Of a DNA stretch of 64,000 bases, positions 1 to 46,106 are shown in pieces. The notes beneath the pieces were generated by a model. The model was not told where the DNA came from, searched no databases, and saw only the letters and a list, made by a program, of their open reading frames with translations. The position numbers and the translations under genes were made by a program. The stretch's first letter is position 1. The number at the start of each line of letters is the position of its first letter. Origin of the DNA: Klebsormidium nitens. Lineage: Eukaryota; Plantae; Klebsormidiophyceae. The stretch lies in assembly GCA_000708835.1 (NCBI GenBank), contig DF237379.1:1-64000 (forward strand), written 5' to 3'.

Positions 1-89
1 TAGAAGCAGGAATGGTTTCAGAACAGTTAGGAACAGGAAAGAAAGAACGGTCAAAGAGGAACGCACCTGAATAGAAAAGATGAAAGAAG

Positions 90-1159
90 CTAATGCAAGC
101 AGGCCTCGCGCTCGAACTCTCTCAATTGTGCGATCGGAATATCTTCCTGTAGGCCCAAGTTGCGGGAAACAGCCAGCTTCTGAGAAAGTTTGTCGCGGAT
201 GTAGAGGCCCATGGCGGTGTCGGAACGCCAGCGCCCGTGGCGCTTGATCAGACGGTCAGAAACCTCGTTCGTGGCCGCGCCCGTCGCGCCCCCGCGGCGG
301 CCCGAGTGGGTACCGTACAACTTAGGATCCAGCCCGAGTAAGCTAGCAGCTTCTTTGAACCAACTCAAAACAGTGTTGTAGCAAGGGGGGTTGTCCTTAA
401 GGCGATGGACGGGGACGCAAGGAAGGGTGGCGCGAATGAGAGAACCGGGGCCCGACGAGTGGTAACGGCCGACACTAAGGAGGCGCTGGATCAAAGCTAC
501 CGGGCAATAGGGACCACCAAGACGGGCGACGAAGACTGTGTCGCCAGTGCGATACTGATCCGTTTTGCTATCGGGAATGAAGATTTCCATGTGGGAAGAG
601 CCTACGAATTTGACGTGCTGCCACTGGATCGCAACGAGGTCGTCATAACGGAAGAGAGAAACGTAGCAGAGAGTGACGGAAGCAAGTTTCATCAGCTGGT
701 ACAGCGAAGCGGACGGGGAGCCCCAAAGGTCGAAAAGGCGACGAATCTGAGACGCTAGAAAGGGGCGCTTCTGGTTAAGCCCGGCGATCTTGATACGGCG
801 TGCTGCCTCGCGCGCCATCCGAACCAGGGGATGATTAGTAGGAGAAGGGAGGCCAGCAGAGGTGTGGTTAAAATAGACAGCACCGGAGAAAGTCTTAAGG
901 GGGGCAGGGGTGTTGGCGGTTCTAAGAAGTTTCATCATGTAAAGGGCTACTTGGAGGGGATTGGAGGGCAGTGCTGAGACTCCTTTTTTCTGACACCAGT
1001 CCTTGTAGCGACGCCAAGGCCCCGCGTACAGGCGATAAGTCCCCGGGGCGCGGCCCACGAGAGAGGCGTCGTGAAGATCGACTGACAGGGCAGCTAGTTC
1101 GGGATCGAAAGACTGGAGACCCGCCGCGTCCAAGTCCCAACTTTCGAAGTTAAACCAGT
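90..1159 (-). CDS. Tyrosine recombinase of the DIRS element
   Basis: Phage-integrase catalytic pattern: R in LFRYDDL, K in SKTDQY, HSGRRGG (HxxR), HGRW, MGLY. No ATG near the start; the frame is open up to a pyrimidine tract plus CGCAG at 1160. Confidence 0.9.
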
Positions 1160-1220
1160 CTGCGAAAGATAGAGAAAGAAAGAATCAGAACCGAAATAGG
1201 ACGGAGAGGGAGAAGCGTAC

Positions 1221-3259
1221 CTAAGACGTGAAGTCGCAGTCGAGGACGAAGACGTCAGAATCCGGAACACCCGTGCCCGACCACCGATCGCGCGACGCAC
1301 AGCCCGGGACCAGCGCTCCGCGAGCGGACGGAAAGAAAAGCTGCCCCCGAACGAACGGCGCAAAACCGCGTCCCGACGCGACGCTACCGCACAGCAGGGG
1401 CCACCACGGGGCAGAACGCCAGCCGAGAACGACGAGAGTTACACGAGCGCGACACGCGCGCGCGTGCCGGATGGTAGCAGCAACTAGAGTGGGAGGCGGG
1501 AAGCAGTAGTTGCGTGCTGGGGGGCCCCAATCTTGAGTAAACGCATTGGCTGCTGCTGGTCCCGGACACCAGTAGAAAGAATTGAAGCAGGGAAGCTTTT
1601 TGTTATGTTCGCTGGCGAAGCGGTCGACTGTGAACGGGCCGAAGAGCTGAGAGACGGAAGAGAAGGTCTCGGGAGACAGTCCAAAATCGTCTACATCGCG
1701 TATCTTGCTCAGGTAGTCCGCGCGCGCGTTCTGCTCTCGAGGAAGCCATTCAGGGCGAAGCTCAATGCGGTTTTCAGAGCAGAAACCGAAAAGCTCCAAA
1801 CAAATGGACTGGAGGTGGTCTTTGGCGGAGCCCCCTTTGGAGAGAATGGAGAAAACGTTCAGAGCATCGCCTCGAGCGATGACACTGCAGTCCGACAGGA
1901 GAGGTTTGAACGCACGAAGCAGACGGAGCAGGCCACTTAATTCGCGCCACGTGGAAGAAGTGATCCCGTGAACTTCGTGGGGTTCCCAAGGACCGTGAGC
2001 TTCGTGTTTGGCGGAACCGATCTCCAGATGACCTCCCCAGCCGTTGCCCCCAGCGTCATAGTAGAGAACCCGCAGGAGAGAATGCTTACGCCAGATGTCG
2101 CGGCTATGAAAAAGAGAAAGACGGGATTGCCAAAACTGGAGCTCGCTTAACGCTGCGCTGTCCAAACTGACTTTGCTATACCAGGAAGAACGGGAGTTAA
2201 GAGCCCGATGGAGGAAGCGGGAAAAAAGCCCAGAGATCGGGCCCGTAACGAGGGAGAGGGATTGAATGAGGCCGGTAACGCGAGCGACTGTTTTTGCGGG
2301 GACAGCGCGAGGAGAGCGAAGGCAAGACTGGATTGCTGAGCTGAGCTTTGCTTTCTGGATTGCGGTAAGACGAAACTGACCGAAAAGCGTGTCTACCACG
2401 AATCCGAGAAACTTGACAACGTGAGAAGAGGACAGCTGGCACTTATCAAGTGACACAACTAGACCGGCGGCAGCGAGGTCGGCGAGGACGGAGGCTTGGA
2501 CACGAGCAAACTCCACAGAATCGCGACAGGCAAAGAAGAAGTCGTCAATATAATGGACCAGCCTGTAGCCCCGCTCGCGCCAGGACTTCGTGAGTTGGCG
2601 CATCACCATGGTAAAAACGTAGCACGCCGGCGCAAGTCCGAAGGGAAGCTGCGTGAACACGTAGAACTGGCCCTGCCACTGGAAGCCAAGGTACTTCCAG
2701 TGGGGTTCGTAGATGTCAATGTGATGGTAGCCTGCTTTCAGATCGATTGTGAAGAGAAAGTCCAGAGGCTGGCAGAGATCGGAAATCATACGGATTGATT
2801 CGTACTTGAATTTGGTGATCTTCAGGAACTGGTTCAGGAAGCGGAGATCGAGTATGAGCCGCAGTTTGTCCTCAGCTTTGGGGACGACGCCTAAGGGGCT
2901 GACGAGGAAAGGTTGTTCTGAGACTGGCATGATTGTCCCCGTGACTTTGAGAGTACGAACCGCCTCGGAGACGAAGTCAGAGTGCTCGAAAGCTGAGGGA
3001 TGGTTGCGGAACAGCTGGGGCTCGAGGGGGGGACTGGAGATCCAAGGCAGTTTGTAGCCAGTAAGAAGAATTGACATAACGAAGCTAGAGGTAACAAAAG
3101 CCCGCCAAAACTGGACGTGTCGACGAAGACGGTGGCGCAGCCAGGGTTCGGGGGCCTTAGATGAAGACTTCGCAGCAGCAGCCTTTGGAGGGTCCTTAAA
3201 GCCTTCGAACTCCGCAGCATCTGTAAGGTCTGCGAGTTTGTGAAGAGATTCGCCCGTGG
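1221..3259 (-). CDS. DIRS pol: reverse transcriptase, RNase H and C-terminal DNA N6-adenine methyltransferase-like domain
   Basis: RT motifs LRLILDLRFLN, IDLKAGYHHI, LPFGLAPA, YIDDF, FLGF. RNase H motifs YDAGGNGWGG, WRELSG, RGDA, NARADYLSK. MTase-like VDRFAS...NAFTQDW...YCFPPP. The track ORF extends to 3581 only by reading through a T-rich tract. Confidence 0.92.
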
Positions 3260-4555
3260 CTGCGAAAATAGAAACAACGAGAACATAAGTAAAACAAGAA
3301 GCGGGCGAGAGCGAGAACGAGAAGAAAGAAAAATTGTCTGTCGAGAACGAGAACGAGAAGCGAAAATAATACTGAACAAGAAATAAAAAATAAAAAATAA
3401 TAATAATAATAAAATAAACGAAACAAATGAAAAACGTGGCATCAGCCAGAAGCGTAGTCATTCCCTGAAGTTCCTCAGGGAAAATCTGGCAGCATCCTTG
3501 CCAGCAGAATGCAAGGAATCGTAAGAGGAAGTCAGACGGTCCCCGAGGCTGACGTAAAAGGGGGAGGTCGGCAAGTATCACCGTCCCCGAAGGATTGGCC
3601 TATCCGGAGAAGCAGGACCAAGCTGGTGTGGTAAATCTGAAAGGAGAAAAAGATGTAGAGAAACAACAAAGTTATGGCTCACAACAACTCGTACAGCAAT
3701 GGAAGCTAGTCTCCCAGTCTGTATGATCAGTGCCACGAAAGATTCTACTGCAAGGAGAAAACGAAGATGTTAAGGATGGGAAAAGAGAGAGGTACAGAGT
3801 CGCACACAGGCTGTAAATAACATGGCATATAGTTTAGAAGAATTGTTTGTTAATTAGAAGGAAAGAGAAAGCTAAGAGCGGGAAACATTTTACAAAGGGA
3901 TCAGAAGATGGAACAGAATCGTGTGTATGAAACGAAAACAAGGACGAGAGAGAGAGAAACGAGAACGAGAGTGAGACCAAACGAAAAGAAAGAAAGGAAA
4001 ATGAAATGGAGCCAGACAGGTAAAGAAGTGGAAGGAGAAATAAAAGACAGAAAACCGAAGAAGTGAAATAACTCCAGAGATCCAGAGCGGACAAGGACTA
4101 GTGAAACCAAGTAAAAGGAAGAAAGACTGAGCATAGATCAGAGAAAACGATAGTAGCAGAAGAAAGAAGAAAAAGAAGAACTATAGAGAAAAAGAGTGGG
4201 AGTAAGACACTGCTGAAATCACGCCACAAAGAGATGCATAGATAAGATAGATGCAAGCGAACCATTATCATGGTAAACAGTTATGTTAGGATCACTTGCT
4301 AGAAAGAGTACACCAAGAAGGTTTCGCAGATATCCAATAGTTGTAGCTACAGGGGTACAAGAGAAGTGAACAGAAGTCACCTAAGAGTGAAACCAATGTC
4401 TACAACAAACTATCGTTATCGACCAAATCTTCTATTTGCAGAAACCATTACTGCCAAAGTCCTGGAGTGTACCAGATGTCCTGTGCAAATTGTCTTGCCT
4501 ACTCCATCCTGAAACTGAATTCTGCCAGAAACTGAATTCTGCTAGATGCTGGATG

Positions 4556-5548
4556 CTACGAGTAACCGCGACCAGCATTCGCTGCGGAGCTGGCTGCGAA
4601 GGGGCAGGAACCTTGGACATGTCCGATTTGACCACACGACCAGCACTGAAGGCTTGAGCTGCGGCTGCTAGAAATGTTGGCCAAGGAAGGGCGAGGGGCA
4701 TGAGGAACAGCAGGGGGAGGAAGGGCTAAGCCAGGAGCAGGGGAAGGGGAACGGTTGGTAATGGGGGGAGGCAGGTACTGGCTCTGGTAGATCGGAGAAG
4801 GAACAGGATTGGGGAGGGGAGCTGGCATGGGGGAGGGAACGAGAATTGGCTGAGGAGGGTGAAACCAACCAGGTTGGGGGGAAGGGGAACGGTTGCGGTT
4901 AAAGAAGCTGCTGCGTCCAGGGTTCTGTGGGAAGGCTGACTTTTGCTCCTTGGCAGGTTTCGCGAGTTCTTCTGAGGCTTTGCGTTTCTCCGCCAGGGAT
5001 TTCTTTGCACGGGTTGCCAGGCTGACTTCAGCAGGATCCTTGGACGCCTCCTCACGCAAAAGGACCATTTCGGATGCAACCTCCAAGCCCTCAGAATCCC
5101 AGTCCATCAAAAACTGAATGCCACCAGCCAAAGCGAGCTCACCTTCGTCACACTGGCCCCTGAGGTTCTCGATCTGGTCCTCAGACAGATGAGCCAGCGG
5201 CGAAGTACCGTCCAGATGAGCTTCGAAGGTCTGCTTCGTCTGAGAGAGTGCTTCCTGAGCCTTTTCCATCGGTTGCATGATCCTCTTGACCTCGGGGTTA
5301 GAGACACGATCTGACTTCTTTGGAGCAGACTTCGCGAGCAGCTGTGCTTGGAGGGAGTCAATCTTCTCCGATTGCTTCGCGAGAGTGGCCTCTTGTGCAG
5401 ATGCATGTGCTGAGAACTGATTGGTCATCTGCTTGAACATGGCTTCTGTACGAAGAGTTGCTTCGCGAGCCTCCTGAGCAATCCGTTCCGCAGCGCTGAG
5501 ATCTGCATTCTGACTAGGATTCTGCGAGGTCCCCTCAGGACCTGCCAT
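4556..5548 (-). CDS. gag-like ORF1 of the DIRS element
   Basis: ATG at 5548 (MAGPEG). Coiled-coil N-half, Pro-rich linker, C-terminal zinc knuckle CWSCGQIGHVQGSC (CX2CX4HX4C). Confidence 0.8.
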   Translation of the reverse strand: MAGPEGTSQNPSQNADLSAAERIAQEAREATLRTEAMFKQMTNQFSAHASAQEATLAKQSEKIDSLQAQLLAKSAPKKSDRVSNPEVKRIMQPMEKAQEALSQTKQTFEAHLDGTSPLAHLSEDQIENLRGQCDEGELALAGGIQFLMDWDSEGLEVASEMVLLREEASKDPAEVSLATRAKKSLAEKRKASEELAKPAKEQKSAFPQNPGRSSFFNRNRSPSPQPGWFHPPQPILVPSPMPAPLPNPVPSPIYQSQYLPPPITNRSPSPAPGLALPPPAVPHAPRPSLANISSSRSSSLQCWSCGQIGHVQGSCPFAASSAANAGRGYS

Positions 5549-5741
5549 GCTGAGAGATGCAGAAGGACGTTCGCAGAGAAATGAAGCGAGAAACAAGACG
5601 AAAGCTGCTGGAAAAAACTTCTAATCGTGCATGGCTGCTAGGGTTGACGGAGGAAGCAAGCTCTAATGACGGGAGAGGACAATGCACGAAGAATAAGAAG
5701 GAGAGAGGGAGAGAAGGAAAGAAGAAGACGAAGAAGGTACA

Positions 5742-5902
5742 GCAAGGAGGCGCCGCCCTCCTTGCGCTGTGACTTGAGTTGCAGAGCGACAGATTGAAGA
5801 AGCTGTCGCGATGACGCGGCTTTAAGAAGCCGCGGTCAGGGTTAGGTTAGTGCTTGTTTAGCAGAAAACCTCGGTTTTCGACTCACTACGATCGTCGAAA
5901 AC
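5742..5902. repeat. Cluster of five short inverted repeats (hairpins)
   Basis: gcaaggagg/cctccttgc (5742-5765), gcgacag/ctgtcgc (5786-5809), cgcggctt/aagccgcg (5815-5834), gaaaacc/ggttttc (5864-5879), gttttcgac/gtcgaaaac (5874-5902). Confidence 0.65.
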
Positions 5903-5914
5903 TATCAATTTTGG

Positions 5915-6410
5915 CCGCCGGACCAGGCAGACCGACCGACCGCCGGACCGCTGTATCAGGTTCTGGCTGTCGGACCAGGCAGACCGACCGACCGCCAGAC
6001 CATATGTCATGCTGTGCAACCCTGGCCGGACCGGTCCAGCGGTCGGTCGGTCCGACAGAATTTCACCCGGGCCCGCCCAACCCAAGCTGTCCACCGGTAC
6101 TGTAGTATACTGGTATACAGACGGTCGTCCGGACCAGCCAGACCGACCGAGCGTTGGACCGGGGTAAAAGCATAGGGTTCAAGGTCCCTAACCCCAATAC
6201 GTCCCGCCAAGGCCATACCCTACCCACCCTAACCGCCCAGCTAACCCCACCAAGGTCACTGGGAGGCTTACGACAAACCAAAAACCTAAGGGATAGTGAC
6301 AAACCCTAACCCTAATTCGTCCCGCCAAGGGCTCACCCGTACCCACCCTAAACCCCCCGCTAACCCCACCAAAGTCACCCGGACGGTCGGTCGGTCGGTC
6401 TGTGACCTCC
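5915..6410. repeat. Repeat block with (GACC)n motifs in both orientations, telomere-like CCCTAA units and a ~65 bp imperfect direct repeat
   Basis: ggaccaggcagaccgaccgaccgcc occurs twice (~5920, ~5972), with reverse-orientation ggtcggtcggtc at ~6042 and ~6385. aaaccctaaccctaa at 6301-6315. cgtcccgccaagg...ctaaccccaccaa.gtcac at ~6200 and ~6319. Confidence 0.65.
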
Positions 6411-6949
6411 CCCGGAGTCCAGCCAATGCCGAAAATCACCGATATAGTATGAATTAAATACACGATTAATTCAGAAAATCCCTGAAGTTCCGCCGCCGGA
6501 TCAAAAGCACCGGAATAGGAGACCGGAGCTTAAAATCTCCCTTGTGGACCCAGATTAGCGGGCCCCTGGAAAAAACCAGGCTTGAGGCCTGGGACTCCCC
6601 TAGTCCGTACACGGCAATGAAAATCAAAAGCTGGTATTCCAAGGAAAGCGGCCAGTTCGATCCGCTGCAGGCTGTCCTCTGAGCCGGCGTTCCAGTGGGT
6701 CGTGCATGAGTTGGATCCTGCATCAATCTCGTCAAACCAGATGTACGGAGTTACTCAGGGAAGGCTGATGTCAGGCTCGAAATACACGTGCACATGCATG
6801 TACTGTGGCCCGGCCTGTGCAGCTTGTGCAAGCAATCTTCCGCGCTACAGTCTTCAACCTTTCGCAGCGTCTCGATCGCGTTCGTCATTCCAGATCACGA
6901 GCGGCAATGATGTTACGGTCCTGGCTTTCCAGATAGAAGCGCCAGGGTT

Positions 6950-9900
6950 TCTGCCAGTTTGACGTTGACGCCGCTCATTGCCCAGCTTTTGAAGCATCCG
7001 AATAATCATGGTTGTTGAGTCGTGACCATTATTTGAGCAGCGAGCCAATCTGGACATACCGTCGCAGTGCCGCAGGGAGGTGATACAAGTCCGTGATTCT
7101 CATGTAGACTGAACTTCACATGACAGCCCAGCTTCCCACCGCTCTCTGAAGCGTACTTTCAGCCTCTCGAAGGTTGGAAACTGCTAGGTTTTGGTCGGCC
7201 GCTGTGGGCATCCAGAAGGGTGAGTCTTCAGTAGTTGGTCGCTTTCGGACACGTGCTTAGTCAGCAGTCGCTGCTTCGCTGAAGTGGTCAAGCAATGAGA
7301 GAACGTTTCTCGCTTCTCGCTAGAGAGACCATTTGTGAACAAAAGTACCCTGATGCTGTTTTAGCCGTCCCTGCTTTTCTTCTGCGATCATGCATGTGCA
7401 ACTCAAAGACTCGTCTGGTATGGACTCGTGCACGATCATCAGGGTTTGCAACTGTTTTGGGTTGGGTACAAAACGCGCGGCTCTCCGTGATGTCGCCCGA
7501 AAGGAAGTTTGTCTAAAACTCCTGACCCGGTTAACCGTTTCAAATCAACTTGAAGAGCAGTGAATTCGATCTTCCGCTGGATCAATTGAAAGCTTTTCAG
7601 AAACCACTTGCAGCCTTCCATAACATATGGCGCGAACGTTTGCCTTTTCAAATGGTTTGTCAAACACTTTCCCGGTTGTAAACAATCTATCAAGAGGATC
7701 ATACATAGACGTTCGCCGGTTTATATCGTCTTGCTCTTCGTTCCTCGAGTTGGGTGCGGCGGAGATCATCTATGTGTCGACGTCCGGTTGTGAAACATCA
7801 AGTCAGCGTCACAAGCTGAGCTGCCTCTTACTCAAAATTGGCGCGCCTCCGAGGTGTATACCCTCTTGACCGTATAACAGTATAATTTTGCTGTTCGTCA
7901 ACCCGTGCGAAATTTTGGAAGGATCGCGCACGTTGAGGTTTCTCTGTTACGTTTGCACCTGATCTCCTTGTTGTGGCGCCAAAGCAATTGTGGACTTGAG
8001 GCACCATGACTCCAGCCGGGAGCGAATGGCAGTCCTGCCGTTCATTATATATAGGGGCAATCGGGCGAATATCCATAGCGTGATCATTGCAGGCCCAATG
8101 CCACAGCGCCCTCCTACCCTTCTAACTGCAGAAAGAGAGTTGTTGTCGTATGTGAATCATTGAATTCTTCTGTATTCCAATTCCATCAGGGAGTCCTCTT
8201 TGCGTACGGATGGATTGTGGGCTCAACGAGTCAACTAGTAAGCATTAGCGCAGCCAAGAGCGACTGGCACTCCGGCCGCCTTCAGAACGGGGTCAGAAAT
8301 GTGCGAGGCTCGATCATCATTGCTGAGATGCTGCAGGCCTACCACGTCGGCTTTACAAGTCGGGCTTTGCATTCGCTCAAGATCAAGCTCCACCCAAACG
8401 TATCGGTTGGACGTAGCAGGCCAATGGCCTTCTTTCGTGGATTCGGTACTGTGATGCGTTTGCACTTGCAATCAGGATGAATCGTAGGCAATGTGCAAGG
8501 CGCCTAGTAGAAAGACGCGTCTAGCAGCGGTTGATGTTGATACTTTGCGACCCCGCAGATACAAGCTTTCTTCTACTTGTGCTCCGTTTAGTTTCTTCAT
8601 ACTTTCTAGAAATTTCTTGTTATGGGCGGCCAGTATGTAGGCTGTTTGGCGATACAGTGCCCGGTATATAGCGCCAATGCTCCAACAACAATCTTTATGA
8701 GCGGCCGGGTTGGCATCTTCCCAGAAACCGACCCGCCAAACCAGCGTTGGAAATTGGCACTGCAAGGGAAAGAAGCCACATATCGTGTTCAATCATTTAG
8801 TTCCTAACTTGTGTTGGGCACGCACCGCTTCTTCTCGACCCGTTAAAACGACGGTTTTGCATCGGTATCCTGCAAACATTTCATATTGAAGTGAAATTTC
8901 CTGAGTCCGTACACGTCGGCAAGGAACGAGAATGACTGGTAATGAAAAAGAAAGCACCAGAGACTTTCATCGAGTAAGTTCAGCTTTTGAGCCCGCTTGA
9001 AGGAGGGCGGTGCCTCCACTTGCCTTGTTGCAACGCCCTTTCTTCATTTTCGCCTACGAGCGGCAATGATCGGACGTTCTGCTCCTTGCTTCCGGTCGTT
9101 GTACGGAACGCCAGTACGAATCCCTCTGTTGAGTCGACTTTGATGCCCCTCATTAAGGCTTACTTCCGTTCGCGTTCAAGGGTTTGTCGACTCTATGACC
9201 ACGCTTGAGCAGCAGTGACATCTCAACAAACCGTGGGCCACGGAGTCGATACACGCCCGTGCTTGCCAAACTGGACCTTAACATTAAGGCAGTGCTTCTC
9301 GGCGCTTTCCAAGACCTAGCTCCATGGCACTCTGGGATGGAAAGCTGCCAGGCCCTGGTCGTGACGTGTTGTGGGCACCGAAATCGGTTGTGGGCTTGGT
9401 CGCTTTCGGGCCTGTTTTTCGCCAGCTTTGATCAAGTAGTCAAGCACTGATGGGAATGTTCTGGCTTCTTGAGACAGAGGCCATTAATGCTCGTGGAATC
9501 CTGACGCTGTTTACGCACTTGCCTCGGCCTCCCAAGGGTATGCATATGCACCTCGATTGGAGTAAGGAGTCAGAAGCAGCAGGATTGAAACTGGTCTGGC
9601 TTGAGTGAAAAGGAGCCTTGACCTCACAACCCCAATACGCGATACGTGGGTTGTGTCTAGAACGCCAATGCAAATACAGCATGATGCAGACACGTGAAGA
9701 ATTCGGAGTGGATCACCAGCTGGAGTGTACGTTCGAAGAACGCTTGCGGTTTACTGGAAGTTTCGCGACCAATTCGACCTCAGTAGATCCAGATGCGTTG
9801 CGCGTTTTCCTCACTTTGCACGCTCCCCCGAGTCAAATGAGATTTCTTTGAGTGCTTCTTGTCTTGGTTTCTTGGTGCCCACAATATGCTGTGCGAGGAA

Positions 9901-23762: not shown

Positions 23763-26700
23763 CTAGACCCAAACCTTGATAGACCGATTATACCGTGGTC
23801 GCATCGGCGGCGCGGAGCTCGCGCGACTGGTGCGCCGTTCTGCCGTCCTGTACACGTAGGGCGACGAGGCCCTTCTGAACGGCAGTTTCGCGCTCGAATT
23901 GGCGCCGTCCGATTGGGCACGTGCCTCTGCAAAGTATCCGCCTAAGTCCTCCACTTTCGCAGGGAACCCAGGAAGCGGGCGCCCGTCCATGAGCACCCGG
24001 AGGCCGACCGGAATTCCGCTGAGAGCGGCGGCGGAGTCGGCCTGGCTTGAGCGCCGAGAGGAGAGCCGGCTGTGCGTGGGGGCGGAGTCCGCCCGGCTCT
24101 GCCTGCCAGACGGGATTCCGCCATGGGTCGCAACGGAATCCGTCCTGCTCGGACGCCGAGAAGAAGCCCGGCTTCCATAAGGTGACGGAAGGCGACTCTC
24201 GTGTCTTCCCTGTCCGTAGGCGTTTGCGGAGATTGCCCTTTGGCTGCTCGCATTTGGCGGAACTCCACGACTAGACGCCGGTCCACCTCTTTCCCATTTT
24301 GAGAATCGGGTGTCCGCACCTGGCTGGCCCTGGATCGAGCTGGGGCCCCGTTCTGGAACCTCATCCAGCGTCTCCCTCCGTCCGCCCGCGTTTTCCCGGC
24401 CGTCATTCTGCCGCTGGCCGGAGTCACTGCCCTCGCTTCTTAGATTCAAGTCGCTTCGCCTTTGGCCGTTTTGGGGAGCTTCGTCTGACGAGTGTCGCAA
24501 CGAAGAATGCCCGTAAGGAACCGCCTGCTCCTCAGCGCCGACCCACCGTCTTTGTGAGTTTCGGGCGACCATGCCCTGCCGCTGCCCAGGGCCAAGGTCG
24601 CTCCAGGGTTCCGGCCACGTGCCAACCCGGCCGTTGGCCTCGTTTCTGGGGGGAATTGTAGTAGGGGCGTCGGACGGGGGCTTTGCTTCGTCTACGGACG
24701 GTCGTGGTCGTCCGACGGACGGCGCCACCCCTGAGCGGGGGCTCAGGTTGGCAGGAGATTCGCCCCCCTGGAGCTGCAGAAGCGTGGTCGCACAAAAGCT
24801 TAGCCTCAGACTTCGACCTAAAGGTTTGCTTCCAAGACTTTAGTATCTGGAGTGCGAAGCGCACAGCTTTCGCACTTAGGAAATATCGTCAATGGAAGCT
24901 GCATCGGGCAGCCTGCAAGTGGGACTCTCGAGTGCCCTTAGCACCGCGCCCTTGTCCGGGACCCATTTCCACAAGAACAAAATTAAAGAAAGGACATCTC
25001 TCCCGCAACCGGCACGTAAAAGAGAAGCAGAAGAGCAAAACCATTTCAAACTCTTTGCCGGTGTTAAGAGCCACTTGACATCTTTTGATCTACTTAGACG
25101 GATCTTCAATATCTCAAGTGTAAGGCATCCATTGTCAGGATTAGTTCCGCAACAAAAAGGGCTGATTGAAGGAGTTCAGAAGCAAAGACGGAACAGTAAA
25201 CCGACGCCCGTGTGTTTTTCGCTGACCCCGCCAGGTGTTTTTGGCACAGGGACCCAAACCCCCCTGCGCGAAATTTTATCGCCGAGAGGTTGAAAGCATC
25301 AAGCAAGCACCATGTACCCACGAACAGAACGAATCAGCCAGCTGTCGCAGGTACTTCCCGGTCAGGGTGGCAGTGTAATCCTTCAGAACTCCATTTTCAA
25401 GCACGCAAATGCACACCAAACAAAAATTCACAGCGAGGAGAGAACCCAACAAAGAACATTTCATTAAGGCCGAGAAGAAATGTAACGAAGAGCGCACCAT
25501 GTACTCGTGCATGGCCTGTTGGCGCGCCAGCTGTCGCAAGTACTTCCCCTTGAGGTGCTTGTAGCGGCCCCGCTGCTCGGTCAGCCGCGCGGCCGCCTCC
25601 GCCAGTTGCGCCTGGAGCGCCGCGATCTCCGCAGCCTGCGATTCTATGCGGCCTTCCGCATCGGGACTGAAGACCGGGCCCTGGGAGCTCGCAATCTGCA
25701 GTACGTTCGCAGGCTTAAGTGTTAGATAGTCTTGGTGGCCACTTTCTTGAGAACGAGGAAACGAGGATAAGGGGAGAGGCAGGGTCAATTGGACAAACGC
25801 GTTTATATCCGGCTCTCGGCATCAGGACGAGAGAGCGGGCCCTGGGAGCTCGCAATCTGCAAACAGTCAGCGGACGACAATTCTGTCAGCAAACCTTTGT
25901 GGCCAGGTGCATAGGTCTGGGGTACAGACGACACAGGAGAAAGAGGTGACGAGGACAAAAGCCGGCTAATGGCTTCGAGGTGAGCTCTGGGGCTCGCAAA
26001 GCGCAGACAGTTAGTGGATAATGCTCTGCAATCCAGCGGGTTTTGTGGCTGCACCCGAGGCAAGACGAGAAGGAAACAGGACTGGAGGCGGCTTAGCACG
26101 CTCGAATCTAGGCAAGCCTTGGCGTCTTAGGGTGGAGATTGAAGTAACTGGCGTTCTGCAGTCAGTGTTAGCCCATAAACAACCGCACCTTGTCCAGAAG
26201 CTTGGACCTGTCGTCCTCCAGCACTTTGACCCGCAACTGAAGCTCCCGGTTGGACTCCCGTAACTCCGCCACCTGGACGGGTAAGTCACAACACAAATAA
26301 GGTGAGGTTGTTTATGGGACCCAGCCAGAGCAAGAAGGTAAGTCACAACACGAATAAGGTGAGGTTGTTTATAGGACCCAGCCAGAGCAAGAAAGAAAAC
26401 AAGGGTTTACCATAACAAATTAGCGGTTTTGAAAAGGACAAAGGGCGGAGAGAGGCTCATACACGCCCCTAACGTTTCCAAGCGTTGTTCTGCCAGAGGT
26501 AATCTGTCAAGGTCCGCTAAGACGCCTGTGATGAACTACCAGAGGAGCGCAAAGGCTGGGCCAGGAGTTCTGTACGCTTCGCTCGGCAAGATTTCATCTG
26601 TAATGATGGGGAGAGGAGCGGGAAAGGATTCTATTTCAGAAGGTTCTACATCTACTCCACGCAAGAAAAATGCTCGACTTACAGAAGGCTCATCGAAAAG

Positions 26701-29700
26701 CAAAGTGTCTAGCAGAACTTTTCCGCTGCGCTGAATCCTGAGCCAGCCATAAGCCCTCACCTTCAAGCGCAGAGACGCGTTGTCCTCGACGAGCTTCGCC
26801 TCGTCATGTGACGCCCTCTGACTAGCTTGCGCTGCCGAAACAGCGCCCACCAAGCCCTGTTTGCTAGGCGTCCCCTCCTCCCCAGTCGGACGCTTATCGC
26901 TCCACACCCGCGCCTGTCCGGAGTCCGAACTCTGCCGCTCCCCGGGACTTAACCGGGCGCTTTCATACGGCGGCGGAACCGTTGACCCTGCGTTCTGCCC
27001 CGCTAACCCGTCATTAACCGCCCCAGCTAACGCCCCAACCGACTCCCCGACCGTAGTTCCAGTGTGCATTCCCACAGTTTCAGATTCTCTCGTCGCTTCC
27101 CTGCTTCCGAAAGGTGCCGTCCCAATCCTTTCGCTCGTTGAACTGAATCCTCCGTGCTCGACGCTAATTGTCCTTTCTTCCCCAAAAGGCCCCTGCCTTT
27201 CTTCCAGCAAGCGGACCTTTTCTCTCAGTCTTGCAATCTCCGCCTCGAGCGTCCGCCGAACGCTTTCCGCCTGACGCCCGTTTCCGGACGGCGCCGCCTG
27301 CACGCCCGTCCGAACTCGTTCTTCCGTCCCACTTCCTGCGTGCTTACCCAAGACGTTAGCCCCTGGCCCCTCCATTTCCGAGCGTCTCTCGTTCTTATGG
27401 ACTTGAACCCCTCGTGGCTGATCAAACCCCCGCGCATCTTCGGACACCTCCGGACCGTCACTCTCTCTCCGTCCGTCCGACAACACCCGTTCCTCAGACC
27501 CCTCCAACGATCTCTCCGACCCGTCACTCGCCGCAACCGTTCCTTCCGACTCAAAATTCCGTTCCTTATTTGCCTCCGCTTCTCTCTCCGTTGACCTTTC
27601 CCAGCGAGCGCTTTCTTCTCCCGCCATACTGTACTGCTCCAGGATATCCTGAACCTCTGCGATCATCTTCTCCTTCTGAACCGCGTCCCAATCCCCCTCC
27701 GATTTTCCCCCCACCTCTAGTTCCAAACGCTCCACCTTCTGCGTCAAAGCATCTACCTGCTCCTGTTTGGCCCTCAGGAGAAAGTCGCCTTGACTTCCTA
27801 TCACCTCCATGCCCGCATGGCTCCTCGCCAGCTCTAGTTGCAACAACTCCTTCTCATCTAGTAGCTTCTTTACAGTGCCTTCCAACTCCCCTACCTTCTC
27901 CTCTTGCTCGTTCAACAAAACCGTCAACCGCTGAACCTCCGCCCCCCGCGCCTGGGATTCATCGACCAGTCTGCGCGTATCTTCATTCAGCGCCTGTGCA
28001 AAACTCTCTCTCTCGTCAATCAACTCCAGCACTTTTCCGTTCAACCGCTCAACCCTGGTCTCTTCCCTCCTCATCGCGTGCTCTGTCTCCGCTTCTCGCG
28101 CCTTTGCTTGGTCTTCGAACCGCCTCTTCTCTCCCCGCAGTTTGTCATTCTCAATCCACAACCCTCTCACCGATTCGCTCCCCCGCTCTCCACATTCCGG
28201 ACACTCTTCGATCCCTTCTGACGTTTTAGCTCCTGACTGTCCCACCTCTACCCGCTTCTCGAACCCTCTCTTATTTCTCCCGAATTCTTCTCCGCCCCTT
28301 TCGGACGGCCCCTCACTCTTGTCTGTCGCTCGCAACCGCTGTCGAACGCTTTCGGACAGCTCTCTCTCGTTCCACAGCTGCTGCTTAAGCTCCCGCACTT
28401 CGTTCTCCAGCCGTCCGATCACTTCGTCCCCTGTCCGGACTCCATTCTCCAGCCGTCCGATCGTTTCCTCCTGCGTCCGAAGGGTCCGAACTGCGGTTTC
28501 GAGCCGTTCGATCGTGTCGTCCCGCGTCCGCACTTCGTTTTCTAGCTGTTCCATCGTCTCCGTCCGCGTCCGAACCTCGTTCTCCAGCCGTCCGATTGTA
28601 TCTTCTCGCGTCCGAAGCGTACGAGCCCTCTCCTCCGTCCGATTTCGGTATTCAGCGTCCTCCCGAGCCCGTTCCGCAGCTGCCACGTGCATGTGCTCCG
28701 CAAGACCCGCTAACTCTTCCTGGATCTCCGCCTTGTAATGCGCCAGACTTGACTCTTGCTCGCGCAATCGGGACTCGAGGTCTGCGACCTGTAAGCAGGA
28801 GAGAAGAAGGTTACTTGCTTTTCTAGCCAGCTTTCATCTTCCCGTGATTTCTCTTTGTTTGAAATGGTCAATTCCGCTGGGAAATGCCGGCAGGCCAGTG
28901 AACAGTCGGAATTGTGCAGAAAAGATGACCTCGACAAGTAGCCTGCCTTACCGTACGAGGACGAGAAGTAACCAGGCTTGTTGTTGCAGCGACCAGAGGA
29001 AGATCCTTTATGCTACGAAGGGCCAGAGAACGGTGCTGCCTTAAAGAGGTCTGTGCGCTAATCCGTCAGCTACTCTGCGTCCTTCGTCAAGCAGAGAGAC
29101 CGTTGCTTTCAGCCTGCCAGGATTCTCCTGCTTTCTCCGTTGAGCAAAGCAGCGAAACGAAGAAGCAAATGAAGCGTAAGAGCACATCCTCTTTCCTACG
29201 GAACTCAGAACGGGACAGACGTTCCTCTTCGAGCAACTCCCCGATCGTCCCTACTCATTGTCGTGATGATGACGCCCGTTACAAGAAAGGGTATCCGTCC
29301 CACCCGTTTCATGTAGTCCACCTTTACTCTTTCCAAATCCACCACCTGCGCTCGAAGCCCCCGTGCATCTTCAACCGCCTTCCCTTTCTCCACTCTCACC
29401 CCTTCCAACGCTTTCAATTCCACTAGGAGCACCCTTTCTCTCGCCAACGCTTCGTCTCTCTCCCTTTTCACCCCTTCCAACTCCCTCTTTTCCGCCACCA
29501 AATTGCCAATCTTCTCTAGTGCATGATCCCGCTCCGCAACCAAATTTTCAAAGTGCGCATGCCATTCTTCCAGCTCTCGACTCATTTGAGCCGTCCGTTC
29601 CTCCAGCCGCCTGCCCATCTCAGCCGTCCGTTCCTCCAGCTCGCGGCCCATCTCAGCCGTCCGTTCCATCGCCTCTTCGACCTCGTCTGCTTCCCGCTCA

Positions 29701-32700
29701 AACTCGCGCATCACCGCCCGACAGCTTTTTGAAACCTCCTCGGAACTCTTTCCCTTCCCTCTCCCCGCTCTCAATCCTTCCCCGCCTGGCAGAGCTCGGC
29801 TGACGTCATCTTGACTCTCAACGTTGGAGGCTTTCAGAGTCCGGAGACGGGTCCGCTGGAGTTCGAACGTCCGTTCAAGCAGCCTGTCGGACAGCTCCCT
29901 GAGAGATTCGGACAACGATTCGACACGTGCCTCGGCGGCGTGAAACTCGTTCCGGCGCTTCTCATGGTCCGCGTCTAGTTGCTCCTGGAGGCGCTCCCGC
30001 TCCATCTGCAAGAGGTCGTCATGATGACGTCAGCGCGGTCGGAGCTCACTCCCGTACTTCACGACCCTGTGCAAAGTGCGTCCAGTCGACTGGAGCAGCA
30101 CGTTGCTCGTGTCCTAGTGCACCTAGAGGCACTCCCATTCCATCTGCAACAAGTGTTGTCAGGCCGACGTCAGCAACGTCGTCTCACTTCCAGAGGTTCG
30201 ATCTAGCTCTACCAGTGACAACACAACGATTACGGCTTCTTGTCATCGAACTAGAACGTATTGCCGATGTTCGTTCCTTGGTCGTCGAGAAGAGCAGGTT
30301 GATCATGTTCCTGTGTGTGCAGGTGTTGCAAGGCTTCTGATTTATTGGTTTGCATTGCGGTTAGTCCCAACCGTACCTGGTGCGCTTGCTCCCGCCCCCG
30401 CAGCCCCTCGATCTTCTGCGCACCCTGACCATTTGCTTCTTTCAAAAAGTCGACGACTCCTACACCCCTGGTCAAAGCGCTCAATGTGATGACTAGCTTT
30501 ATCGCTAAGTTGACCCTTCTTAACCTCCTGGTCAAACGGCTTGACACATGGTCTGCTTTCAAGAACACCTGGTGAGCCAGCTGAGCCGCCCGCAGCTCCT
30601 CATTCCCCCGCTGCATCTCCACCATCTGCTACGCAAACGCTGACAGCCTGCTTCCTATTCTTTTGGGTTCAGGAGTGACAGCGTGGTTAGGTCTTACACA
30701 CTGCGCCAGCTGTCCCGCCTGCAGCCCCTCGTTTCTCCGCTGCACCCCAACCATCTGCTTCACAAAGGCGCACAGCCTGCTTCCTGTTTTTCTGTGTTAA
30801 GGATTGACAGCATGGTTAGCGTCCAAACCTACCTGATGAGCTTTCTCCCGCCCCCGCAGCTCCTCGTTCTCCCGCTGCACGCCGACCATCTGCTTCACAT
30901 ATGCCGACAGCCGCGCCTCGTACGCGGCTGCCGCACGGACTTCCCGCTCGCTCTGCTGGTTCCGCAGGGCCTCGACTTGCTCCAAAGCCCTCCTCACCTG
31001 CAGGCACATCAAACTGCTTTAAATCCAAAAAAGAGAACGAGGCTTGCCAGATTGGGTTGGAATTTAGCCGAGATTGGTTTCGCAGAGGACCGCGGCCTTA
31101 TCCAATCGCCAAAGTATTACTGCCAGCCTCCTGTGGACAGCAATCTCATCGTTACTTATGCTGGTCGATCGAATTTGAAAGTTCCGGTAGGCAAAGCACG
31201 TGTATCCCGCCCTGCAACTTCAAAGTCACCGTCCCCATACGTCCACTTGAACCCGCTATCTTGTTCTTAAGCACCAGATCTCTGGTATTTGACCTTGCCA
31301 CCAGAAAAAAAAGCTCACCTGCTGCTGCAGCTCTTCGCACTGGGTCCGGTATGCCGCCTCCCGCACCCGCAACTCTTCCACAGTCGAGACGCGCCTTCCC
31401 GGTTCGGACCCGTCAGCGTCCGAACGGTCTGAATGATCCAAATCGTCCAACGGACCCGCCTCGTGAACAGCGCCCAAATCCGGTGCCGACGACGATGCAC
31501 GTCGTCCTGGCGTTTTTTTGGACGATTCAGCGGACGGGCGTAAACCGTCGGCTCCGCTGACCGACTCCGTTGCAGAAGTCCCTGAAGATTCAGAGTCCCC
31601 GTCCTCATTCCCTCGCGAGTCCGCCGCTTTTGCTTCTGGCGATCCTCGGACGCTGCTTTTGCTGGTTCGGACCCCAACTTCTCTCATAGAAATACTCTCT
31701 TCACCCTTTTGGACGACCCTTCCACCTGATCGGACACTCTCTTCATCTGTCCGGACTCCTTGTTTGCATAATCGGACGCCCTCTTCTCGTGTTCGGCGGC
31801 CCGCAGACTCTCCCGCCGACTCGTCCTCCGTTCGCACCTCATTCCCCCACAAAAACCCCCACCCCTCATCCCACCGATCCCCATTCACACCATCCTTCTC
31901 CCTCAGCCTCCGGACAGACTCTTCCACAATCGCCGACAGCGCCTCGATCTGCGCGCTCGCAATCGCCGCCGCCTCGGCGCCCTTTCTCTCCACCTCTAGT
32001 TTCTCTTCCCGGGTCACCTGGAGCTCCAGCTCCAGCCGCGCCACCGTTTCCAGCGCCGCTCGCTCGCCTTCCATTACCGCCGTCAACAGCAGCTTCGCCT
32101 CCTCTAGTTGCTCCGCCTTCACCTGGGCCACCTCTTCCCAGCTACCAGGGCTCCGCGGTCTCAAATCCTCTGAAAAAGTCGCATCGTCCAAGACTTCCGA
32201 CGCTTTGCCCGAGCCCGTGACACCTGCATTTTGCGGCTCCGCAGCAGCTGTTCGTTCTGCTGGCATCTCCCCGTTGCTGACCGCCCCACTCTTGTCGGTT
32301 CCGCTGTTCGATAGGACTCTATTCAGAGCCACAAAAGCTTCGTCTTCTGAAACCGTTGGCGCTTTCTGAGAGCGCCGCCGCAGAGGCGTGCTGTCCTGCG
32401 AGTTCGACTCACTCTCCGTTTCCCAATCGCTCGTGTCCGATTCCGTCCGATTACTCTCTCTTCCTGCCCGGCCCACTTTCGGATGCCTTCCGAAAGTTGG
32501 TTCCCCGAAGTCTGCAGAAAGCAACGGCCCGCACTCCCGCAACTTCTGGACGGTTTCCTGTTCGCGCTCGATGCTCAGGGCCAGCTCCGCTTCGAGTGCC
32601 CTGATTCTGCCCCCTGTTTCTCGCGCAAGCAGAGAATTGTTTTCCGCAGACGACGCTTCACTGGACGCCAGCGGAGCCTGGGAAAAGAGTGCGCACGATG

Positions 32701-43494: not shown

Positions 43495-46106
43495 CAACGG
43501 GCTGGACTACATGCAATTGTGATGCTGCCAACGTGGAACTGCTTTCCAGCTGAAAACCGAAGCCCTGGACCGCGCAGTTGGTCACAACAGTATGCCGCTT
43601 TGAGATGGGCTGAGTTGAGAGGTGCTTTTTTTGTGCTGGCGCCCCAGCTTGGGTTTACGTCAAGCGTTTGAACATTGGCACATTCCAGCTTCTTGACCTT
43701 ACTTCTGAACCTTCGAGCCCTGCTGCAAGCCTCTTGCCAACCGAATGCCAAATAGCGGGCTTGACTAGGGCTAGGGTGCGCAAGCAGCATTGCACAATTG
43801 TGCGGCATTGAATTTGTACTAGTAACTGTAGTATACAGGCTCAGCAGCATTGTACGCTGCTAACTGGAAGTTCCCGTTACCGAGAGCTTCAAACTAGCCA
43901 TTACCGCTCGCTACCTTTGGGTACTCTGAAACAGATCTCCAAAAGATCTTAGATTTGTGGCTCCACGTCGCGCGCCGTCAGCATCGAACGCCTAAAGTAG
44001 TTCCCTCAGTCCCAACGAATCTGATCGGATGGTCATGAAGCCATCACGTGCAAGGAGTCGCGATGCGGGTTCACTTTTGCCTGGCGCTTTTGCAGTTTCA
44101 ACAGAAAGTTTGGTCAAGTACCCAAGCGGGTTAACTTCGTCTGTTCGCAACCACTCCCGCCACGACGTCAACAATCCTGCAACCAGGCAAAACTCATCGA
44201 GCAGCTCTTCGATTCGTCAGCATTGGCAGTACGGTAGGTGTTGGAAGGAGCTTTGTGCAAGCGGCGGTGTGGTTACTAAACTGCGGGTTCCTGCCTTTGG
44301 CTAGCCCCCACATTGTGTCCTTGGGTAGCTTTGCAAACCGCAAGGATGCAGTCCACCATGGCTGCCCTGTCGCAGCGGGTGAACCTTGGGGCGGGCCTGG
44401 CAAGAGCTGTGCCGCAAGCGCAGGCTTCCTGCGAGGTAATGTCTCTTCTGTCTTCATGCGAACAGTACACGCTGTGGACATAGTAGACAGCTTCTGCTGA
44501 AAGTGGTTTTGGCAGGTTCTGATCTCGCTTGGGACCAAGACTATGAACCTAGATCTGGCTCTTGCATTGGGAAATTGATGTGTCTGTACAGCACTTCTGT
44601 CCCTAGGTCTCCGGTTCAGTCAGGATCTCAGATGTGTTGCTTGTGGTGCTTACCTGTGTGAGATGCTTTGCTGAATCCGCACTGAAGAGTTGATCAGGAA
44701 GCTGGCATTAAAAGCCAGTCCGGTTTTCCTGTTGCAGGGTGCTTCGCCCGTTCGCCGATGGTCTCACAGCAATAGGAGGATTGATGCAGGTAAAATATCT
44801 CCCTCTGGCAAGTGATTGAGTGTGCTGTCTCTGCTTTCTTGAGAGCGAAGGTTTCCACTTGAGACTGTGATATCCTCTTCGAGGAGTCGGACAATGCTCG
44901 AGGTTTTGTCATTTCTGAAGGTGATAGCTCTTTCTATGCCTTGAGCATTTAGAGGTTCAGTTTCTGTCTATTCTCTCACCTTTCAATCTGCTGGGCCCTT
45001 TCGCCTGCGCCACTCCCCGATTGGTGTCTGTCTTCGCCTCTCATGAATCCGTTCTGTTTGCAGTTTCTGCCAAGGGGCTTGGCTTCCATACATCCTCGTC
45101 TCTCCAGGGTGCAAAGGTCAGGATTCTTCGCTTTGAACTTGTACACCTCCAGCCAGCCGGGTGAAACTTTTGGCTGCCTCGTCTTTCGTTTTGTTAGTTT
45201 TTCCATACCTGCACGCGCGATTCAACCACTTGTAAGATCTGAGCCTGTTTGAGCTTGATGCAAATGACTAGCGAGGCAGAGCTGTGTAGGATTTACAGCG
45301 CCCCGTAACAGTATACTAGAATGCTGATTCAGAAGGAGGACAGGTCCAAAGCTCTGGCCGTTAACATCGGAGTTCGTACTTCCGTTAATTTGTTAGATGT
45401 CATTTTGCCCCTTTTCCGTGGTCAAATAAGAAGAGGTGTCGGCATTGCTACCTCATGAAAGTCTTCAGATCAAGGCGCTTATGCCCTCCGTTGATTCTGA
45501 CCTCCGAGCATCTGCCATGGTGGCACTTGGCACAACCCTTCAGTACTGTATGCATGTCATTTTTCTGGGATTTTTTGTGGCCAGCCTTGTTGCAGTCTCC
45601 AAGGGGACGGTCAACTACATTCGCTAGTCTTTTAGGGTTGTGTGAGCTCCCGCTTCTTGTACTATATCATAGTCCCCTGGTTTGCCTGCTTCTCGTATCT
45701 TGTCAAAAGTCCTCTAGTTTGGCATCTGTTTCAACGCATCTGCTGTTGCAACCAAAAGAAGCTCAACAGGTTCATGCAGCCGCCAGTCTGATGCAATTTT
45801 CTCAGAGTTTAGGGGCCTTCAAGCAGCAACTGACATATTTCTTTTCCATAAGTGCCTGCGCTGTCCTATTCATGTTCACTCAGCCGCTAAAACAGGGCGA
45901 TCTTCCTTGAAAAGGTTCCAGATCCCTAAAAGAGGGGCAAAGCAAAGTTTGTTAATCGGCGATATTCATCTCGCACCAATCATATTGTGTTTTCCACATG
46001 CTCCCCATACTCTGATAGGCACGATGCTTTGAAGAAGGTGTGGAATGAAGAGTCTACACCACTTGCTCATCGGGGCTCATCGATCTGTTACTGTTCCTTT
46101 TTCCAG

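Follow-up and report, generated by a model that had tools for sequence, protein, structure and literature searches.

Near-identical, same-phase candidate splice acceptors precede pol and the recombinase gene of a PAT-like retrotransposon in Klebsormidium nitens

We analysed a stretch of 64,000 nucleotides (nt) from Klebsormidium nitens (contig DF237379.1, positions 1 to 64,000; hereafter the window), of which positions 1-5600 carry, on the minus strand, a retrotransposon with the gene order gag, pol (reverse transcriptase (RT), an RNase H-like region and a Dam-like methyltransferase) and a tyrosine recombinase gene (YR) in sense orientation. The conserved coding sequences of pol and YR both begin directly after near-identical candidate 3′ splice sites (acceptors) of the same phase, and neither has a start codon at its beginning. 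This feature is real and well defined, and probably reflects a splicing-dependent expression strategy in a PAT-like family.

The element and its paired acceptors

The listing of open reading frames (ORFs), together with our reading of the strand, shows three long stop-free frames in the same orientation on the minus strand of window positions 1-7000 (Table 1). The pol frame matches RVT_1 of Pfam (E 1.6e-19, 70.9 bits, cut-off 29.6), and its translation contains a YIDD motif; its match to Dam (PF05869; E 7e-5, 23 bits) lies under the cut-off of 28.1, and close relatives carry precomputed PF05869 assignments. The YR frame matches Phage_integrase under the curated cut-off (E 1.9e-4, 21.7 bits against 27.1), its translation shows the H-x-x-R, H/W and Tyr motifs, and relatives carry precomputed PF00589; the catalytic motifs of both pol and YR are intact. 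No Pfam match to RNase H was found at E <= 0.01 in the pol of the window; relatives, including some that carry PF13456 or PF17917, align to this region from end to end. No Pfam domain was found in gag; a CX2CX4HX4C zinc knuckle lies close to its C-terminus, a relative (P0165) carries PF00098, and identity to relatives is 56-62% in a 13-sequence alignment.

The order gag, RT/RNase H/methyltransferase and sense YR, combined with a zinc-knuckle Gag, is the layout termed Pat1-like, of the PAT group in the DIRS order (PMC4157794, PMC3266345). We place the element there, as a tyrosine-recombinase retrotransposon of Klebsormidium that is PAT-like, within the DIRS order, and apparently intact. The Dam-like methyltransferase in pol is the mark of DIRS1/PAT as against Ngaro/VIPER elements, and the position of YR, on the same strand as pol and downstream of the methyltransferase, is that of the PAT group. 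The element departs from the typical DIRS1-like layout of overlapping or abutting ORFs with their own starts: gag and pol are 1295 nt apart, and no start codon lies at or near the conserved starts of pol and YR. The 3′ end of the element lies beyond window position 1 and is cut off by the window edge; part of any split direct repeats (A1-B1 ... A2-B2), which are diagnostic of PAT and replace inverted terminal repeats there, would lie beyond that edge. A search of window positions 1-7000 showed no internal repeat of the 5′ region, and no second copy of the element was found within the 64 kb.

A first-pass annotation of this DNA had proposed near-identical acceptors in front of pol and YR, and these candidate sites are indeed present: tctattttcgcag/CC, with its AG ending at 3260, so that the exon would start at 3259, and tctatctttcgcag/AC, with its AG ending at 1160, so that the exon would start at 1159 (a slash marks a candidate exon-intron junction). 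Both are phase 1 as proposed, the distances to the stops (2039 nt for 3259..1221, 1070 nt for 1159..90) being 2 mod 3. The pair is the second most similar among ~41,900 pairs of AG-ending 14-mers in the element; the minus strand of the whole window holds the shared core TTTCGCAG at precisely these two sites and nowhere else, and looser TTCGCAG matches elsewhere come without a pyrimidine tract. A branch-like yUnAy lies 25-26 nt 5′ of both AGs, within AG-free zones of 78 nt (pol) and 61 nt (YR). Since the sense strand is pyrimidine-rich, acceptor look-alikes are common in the element and acceptor-likeness alone is cheap; what goes beyond chance is that the two sites are so similar to each other, both fall at boundaries of conservation and have the same phase. 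Judged by sequence, the element's splice-like signals are of the ordinary host type: the donors (GTGAG) and acceptors (Yn-CAG) of a desaturase-like host gene in the window are of the same kind (3-4 sites, by eye).

The earlier claim that neither gene has a usable ATG stood for YR, whose frame is open from 1184 to the TAG at 90, is closed upstream by the TGA at 1187-1185 and offers no in-frame ATG ahead of the conserved start. For pol it needs a qualification: the frame is open over 3581..1221 and holds an in-frame ATG at 3461-3459, 67 codons upstream of the conserved start and within a stop-free CT-rich run, although the sequence around this ATG is of low complexity and not conserved in relatives. 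Pol is also preceded by 13 ATGs in the gag-pol spacer and by an out-of-frame ATG at 3286. Other details of the first-pass annotation were borne out, namely the pyrimidine-rich gap between gag and pol, tctgcatctctcag directly 5′ of the gag ATG (5548), and AG/GTACGC directly after the pol stop TAG (1223-1221), bounding an AG-free spacer of 61 nt (1220-1160).

The branch-like A of this 61-nt spacer is separated by 35 nt from the donor and by 25 nt from the AG. We considered the spacer as an intron of a Pol-YR fusion and rejected this for the family: in the window copy its removal cannot join pol to YR in frame, because the donor is phase 0 and past the stop, whereas the acceptor is phase 1. In the window copy YR lies in the same frame as pol, with two in-frame stops between them. 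The donor-like site after pol is more likely a signal that bounds the exon than part of a fusion intron, and a 5′ splice site may close the YR exon too, CAG/GTGCGT (Table 1) being the candidate.

The gag-pol spacer contains a further pair of near-identical acceptor-like motifs, ttttctccttgcag and ttttctcctttcag, at 3637-3764, which lie 111 nt apart with GTGAGC between them and are the most similar AG-ending pair in the element. They may represent a small decoy, an extra exon or a local duplication.

Table 1. Positions of the element's genes, candidate splice signals and flanking repeats in the window.
Feature	Position	Strand	Description
Donor-like CAG/GTGCGT	61..69	minus	23 nt past YR stop; exon end 67; third tctat..cag motif directly before; window ends 66 nt on
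YR exon	90..1159	minus	~356 codons; phase-1 start; no ATG before residue ~80; stop TAG 92-90
61-nt spacer	1160..1220	minus	TAG/GTACGC to TTTCGCAG/; CTGAT branch-like, A 1185; in-frame TGA 1187-1185
pol exon	1221..3259	minus	RT, RNase H-like region, Dam-like methyltransferase; ~679 codons; phase-1 start; no own ATG; TAG 1223-1221
Candidate pol 3′ splice site	3260..3290	minus	CTTAT branch-like (A 3286), pyrimidine tract, TTTCGCAG ending 3260
gag-pol spacer	3261..4555	minus	1295 nt; 67% pyrimidine, 42% T; non-coding; unrelated translation upstream of pol in relatives
gag ORF	4556..5548	minus	330 codons (330 aa), ATG 5548, stop TAG 4558-4556; helical N-terminal half, Pro-rich middle, C-terminal CCHC
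Favoured 5′ splice site AAG/GTGAGC (candidate)	5137..5145	minus	exon end 5143, base 1 of gag codon 136; phase 1
Alternative 5′ splice site CAG/GTCCTG (candidate)	5536..5544	minus	exon end 5542 after ATG GCA G; phase 1; consensus 5/9
Possible leader intron	5551..5886	minus	336 nt; putative, GTA/GTGAGT at 5886 to acceptor-like ctctcag ending 5550
Copies of ~41-nt motif	5909-5949, 5961-6001, 6031-6052 (inverted), 6120-6160, 6379-6402 (inverted)		

Junctions and reading frames in relatives

The closest full-length proteins are K. nitens models named 'reverse transcriptase', with 79-82% identity over 97-100% of the pol query; YR is 70-73% identical to its relatives. Many relatives come from JGI, ENA and Logan contigs as mechanical ORF calls; these continue through the spacers without a break, and their translations therefore report on the junctions. 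We anchored the comparison on a conserved Glu-Ser-Leu-His near the N-terminus of Pol, which aligns two sub-families of ~80% and ~57% identity. Sequence downstream of the pol junction is conserved in both sub-families, whereas upstream of it there is only unrelated low-complexity sequence. All 11 ORF-called relatives with upstream sequence have Ala four residues before Glu-Ser-Leu-His, and in all 11 the codon after this Ala begins with G (10 Ala, one Val), the two residues further on varying freely; an invariant Ala followed by a G-initial codon is consistent with what an invariant GCAG/ in phase 1 would predict. No Met stands at the pol junction among family-A relatives, and the absence of a start codon for pol and YR is common to the relatives at ~80% identity.

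At the YR junction all relatives read Ala-Asp-Trp/Val-Phe, as gcag/AC would give. One copy (P0003) reads Arg-Arg-Leu-Val-Gln-Leu there, which is the +1 frame of cgcag/AC TGG TT; this reading shows the same nucleotides at the junction of a copy in which YR and pol do not share a frame. Copies vary in this respect: YR shares the frame of pol in the window, P0054 and P0176, the last two having a stop-free pol-YR spacer, and is out of frame in P0003 and P0007. Since the frame varies in this way, and two stops intervene in the window copy, fusion or readthrough from pol into YR was rejected as the conserved route.

At the other end of pol, the last codon in relatives is TAG, CAG or GAG, usually followed by Val; in the 57% family the end of Pol is followed by Gly-Lys, Gly-Glu, Arg-stop or Trp-stop, all of them compatible with GTAAG or GTGAG. 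Because AG/GT is retained although the stop is not, a 5′ splice site directly after pol seems to be conserved.

The NCBI gene models of K. nitens place introns in this family as well. P0006 uses the donor at gag codon 136 described below; P0002 and P0004 connect the pol acceptor with late gag; and the partial model P0005, whose start is within about two codons of that acceptor, joins pol to YR, skipping a C-terminal motif of Pol that is conserved even in relatives at 40% identity. The inconsistency of the donors suggests that the models are ab initio rather than RNA-based, and we rejected them as evidence for a donor because the donors differ among models and conserved pol sequence is skipped. 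Eight database entries (P0001, P0002, P0004, P0005, P0006, P0010, P0014 and P0030) that are named 'reverse transcriptase' or 'DNA adenine methyltransferase' are actually gene models of this retrotransposon family; the introns of these NCBI K. nitens models are mutually inconsistent, and some models skip conserved Pol or YR sequence.

Relatives were also sought further afield. A metagenome scan with a two-family alignment as query gave relatives at 25-35% identity among the matches listed, and a scan of a viral collection for close copies gave no match. The GTDB scan returned DIRS elements 30-42% identical, located in metagenome-assembled genomes (MAGs). Five of these (L081, L082, L084, L086 and L090) are DIRS-like retrotransposons 37-42% identical to the window Pol, in MAGs labelled Sansalvadorimonas, Stappiaceae, Poribacteria, Nitrosopumilaceae and Nitrospirales, that is, as bacteria or archaea; such copies are almost certainly eukaryotic host DNA that was binned with them.

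Candidate donors and the expression of three genes

A scan of all GT sites from 5900 to 3261 returned a single strong donor, AAG/GTGAGC, with 8/9 matches to the consensus, which is compatible with both acceptors because it is phase 1. In the 13-sequence alignment the residues Asp134-Glu135-Gly136 around it are invariant (13/13), followed by Glu in 11 sequences and by Lys in two. If Gly136 is encoded by GGT, the following Glu and Lys codons would read GTGAG and GTAAG and thus keep GTRAG; Glu to Lys is the sole single-base amino-acid change of GAG that does so. The alternative is CAG/GTCCTG, directly behind the gag start: Met-Ala-Gly is kept in 6/8 gag relatives that have the N-terminus, the next ~15 residues are variable, and the intronic side of the site differs from copy to copy, with a Pro, Glu or Gly codon in the next position. 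We tentatively favour the codon-136 donor. Upstream of gag, the sole ATG of the leader (5631-5629) falls inside the possible leader intron.

The first-pass annotation had suggested that one upstream phase-1 donor is alternatively spliced to pol or YR. This idea fits the conserved absence of start codons, the junction residues, the phase-1 donor in gag and the variable frame of YR, and is partly supported, with the two sites as candidates for the donor. The reading that we favour, and consider rather probable, is that pol and YR are expressed by alternative splicing from a gag 5′ exon, unspliced RNA being the gag mRNA and the template. A single transcript would then express all three genes. Unspliced, it would encode Gag and serve for reverse transcription; in a fraction of the transcripts, a phase-1 donor in the 5′ part of gag (5143, after 135 codons, or alternatively ATG GCA G/GT at 5542) would be joined to either of the two near-identical phase-1 acceptors. 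Joining to 3260/3259 would give the Pol mRNA and joining to 1160/1159 the recombinase mRNA, with the gag-pol spacer and the rest of gag intronic in the spliced RNAs. Both enzymes would borrow the gag AUG and, with the favoured donor, also an N-terminal piece of Gag. The donor-like sites just past the pol and YR stops would define pol and YR as cassette exons. We infer from the anatomy of the element that splicing probably occurs, that it probably uses the codon-136 donor and that the ratio of the products may matter. Retrotransposons are expected to lose introns, as spliced RNA can be copied back into DNA; here introns would survive in new copies because the unspliced RNA is the template. A bolder form of this reading, which we regard as rather unlikely, would make the element a small alternatively spliced gene: an exon with the gag AUG and ~135 Gag codons, followed by mutually exclusive pol and YR cassettes, each with an acceptor in front and a donor behind, both enzymes being made as N-Gag fusions. 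Speculatively, the exclusivity would follow from the small size of the 61-nt spacer, which, with its donor and branch 35 nt apart, would be too small to be spliced.

Several observations weigh against alternative splicing from gag. The match in donor phase is weak evidence alone, because every NGT codon yields a phase-1 GT. Residue 136 lies within a predicted Gag helix (123-170) and not at a domain border, in a low-confidence AlphaFold model (helices 16-73, 85-112, 123-170 and 177-195; mean predicted local distance difference test score 58.6); a domain border at the favoured donor, which we had considered, was rejected on this model. The comparison across copies is at the protein level, on translations of database relatives. 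No join of a gag exon to pol or to YR was found among the ORF-called database proteins, and at least three different donors appear among the K. nitens gene models. In the P0013 family pol starts directly at a Met, and an in-frame ATG stands 0-70 codons upstream of pol in about half of the relatives. Finally, 17 of the 53 best-scoring AG sites (both strands, 128 kb) fall in this CT-rich element.

The in-frame ATGs upstream of pol and these acceptor-like sites also suit an account without any splicing, in which Pol and YR come by unconventional translation from full-length or internally started RNA (from the ATG at 3461 for pol, by non-AUG or internal initiation, by reinitiation, or by readthrough of the stops from pol into YR) and the acceptor look merely reflects CT-rich spacers abutting coding sequence. 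The pol frame does offer an ATG 67 codons upstream, at a distance that varies among the relatives that have one, and pol and YR share a frame here, with no stops in the spacer of P0054 and P0176. Against this, the region upstream of pol is unconserved, and the out-of-frame ATG at 3286 and the 13 spacer ATGs come before pol; the window copy has its two in-frame stops, and the frame of YR relative to pol is different in P0003 and P0007. Such an account also leaves unexplained the invariant Ala and G-initial codon at the junctions and the near-identity of the two sites, and we consider it unlikely. Splicing into conventional polyproteins is a less probable alternative still, to which we give little credence: a donor GCG/GTTACT (exon end 4567, phase 1) would remove the 1.3-kb spacer to give Gag-Pol, and a second intron near the end of pol would give YR. 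This phase-1 GT lies two codons ahead of the gag stop, the C-terminal Gly-Arg-Gly-Tyr of gag is conserved, and models P0002 and P0004 (late gag to pol) and P0005 (pol to YR) make just such joins. The donor, however, has only 5/9 matches to the consensus, three NCBI models use three different donors, and the motif that P0005 removes is the one conserved in relatives at 40% identity; moreover, the sole GT right after pol, being phase 0 and past the stop, allows no in-frame Pol-YR join in the window copy.

That the copy is dead, its start codons having decayed and its two sites resembling each other by chance or local duplication, is very unlikely. Its 3′ end, and hence its terminal repeats, are outside the window, and many related database proteins are frameshifted fragments; yet gag, pol and YR are all complete and stop-free, and because the relatives at 80% identity share the absence of the ATGs, this absence is a family trait and not decay of the window copy. 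The pyrimidine tract and AG before each ORF also resemble the arrangement in organisms with spliced-leader (SL) trans-splicing, and the acceptors might thus receive a leader that resolves a polycistronic transcript. We find this scarcely credible: the leader would need to supply an AUG in phase 1, the exons having no early in-frame AUG, and no SL RNA family was matched in the window, in a search that is uninformative on this point. We know of no report of SL trans-splicing from streptophyte algae.

Surroundings, known systems and implications

Just upstream of the element's leader, at 5900-6402, lie direct and inverted copies of a ~41-nt motif rich in GACCGACCGACC (matched over 19-41 nt; Table 1), and a 118-nt tandem duplication with telomere-like CCCTAA units (6186-6264 and 6304-6383). 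The repeats of 5900-6402 could be the 5′ terminal repeat region of the element, a target of the recombinase, or host satellite. Elsewhere in the window, the plus strand at ~46000-50300 carries a multi-exon host gene whose ORF fragments encode the histidine boxes of fatty-acid desaturases (HDCAH, HDRHH and HIPHH); where its ORFs break, the donors read GTGAG and the acceptors Yn-CAG. A ~6-kb stretch at 26000-32600 has a strongly negative GC skew of -0.22 to -0.28 and several long ORFs (e.g. 26536-28767 and 31256-32542, minus strand), among which no convincing Pfam match was found, one weak sub-threshold match being ZapG-like.

The element shares with Pat1-like/PAT elements the gene order, the sense-oriented YR and a CCHC gag, and its Pol is 33-42% identical to the DIRS-like Pol of other eukaryotes. 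It differs from them in that pol and YR are without start codons, gag and pol are separated by a 1.3-kb non-coding spacer, and splice-site-like signals stand at each ORF. The relative L081 (39% identical; host contamination in a MAG) has the ordinary layout: gag-pol forms a single ORF of 1005 codons, followed by an ORF of 327 codons that begins with ATG and is presumably YR.

Splicing as a way to express downstream genes has precedents. Retroviruses make sub-genomic mRNAs: env of avian leukosis virus starts at the gag AUG and takes over the first gag codons, and pol of foamy viruses has a spliced mRNA of its own. There too, unspliced RNA is both genome and gag mRNA, and a donor at or in the start of gag is joined to downstream acceptors, so that the gag AUG can be used. 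The present case differs in that RT and recombinase, not env or accessory genes, would need splicing; in its two acceptors of the same phase; in having no long terminal repeat or integrase; and in being a prediction from sequence. In rice tungro bacilliform virus, the ORF IV mRNA arises when a short ORF in the leader is spliced in frame to the distant ORF. The likeness is that a 5′ exon several kilobases away, spliced in frame, provides a downstream ORF with a start codon; the difference is that this is a plant pararetrovirus with one acceptor, whereas we are dealing with a retrotransposon with two. Plant Ty1/copia elements (EVD) and BARE make sub-genomic gag RNAs via alternative splicing (PMC5580714, PMC3735527). 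As proposed here, splicing of the transcript sets the ratio of structural to catalytic proteins and the unspliced RNA is copied; the roles are reversed, however, in that their spliced RNA gives extra Gag and their unspliced RNA gives Pol, whereas in our element unspliced RNA would give Gag and spliced RNAs would be the sole source of Pol and YR. In a provisional survey of the literature on splicing and introns in DIRS, PAT and Ngaro elements, which did not cover older key papers, we found no description of splicing-dependent expression.

If the reading of alternative splicing from gag is correct, a tyrosine-recombinase retrotransposon whose RT and recombinase are made only from spliced RNA would represent a different solution to the problem of obtaining several proteins from one RNA, besides the known solutions of overlapping ORFs (DIRS), frameshifting (retroviruses) and gag-only splicing (copia). 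N-Gag fusions, if they are made, could bring Pol and the recombinase into the same particle or ribonucleoprotein, by splicing where retroviruses use frameshifting. Such elements would be mis-annotated as intron-bearing host genes, as in the K. nitens 'reverse transcriptase' models, and annotators of transposable elements who expect ATG-initiated ORFs would score active copies as dead.

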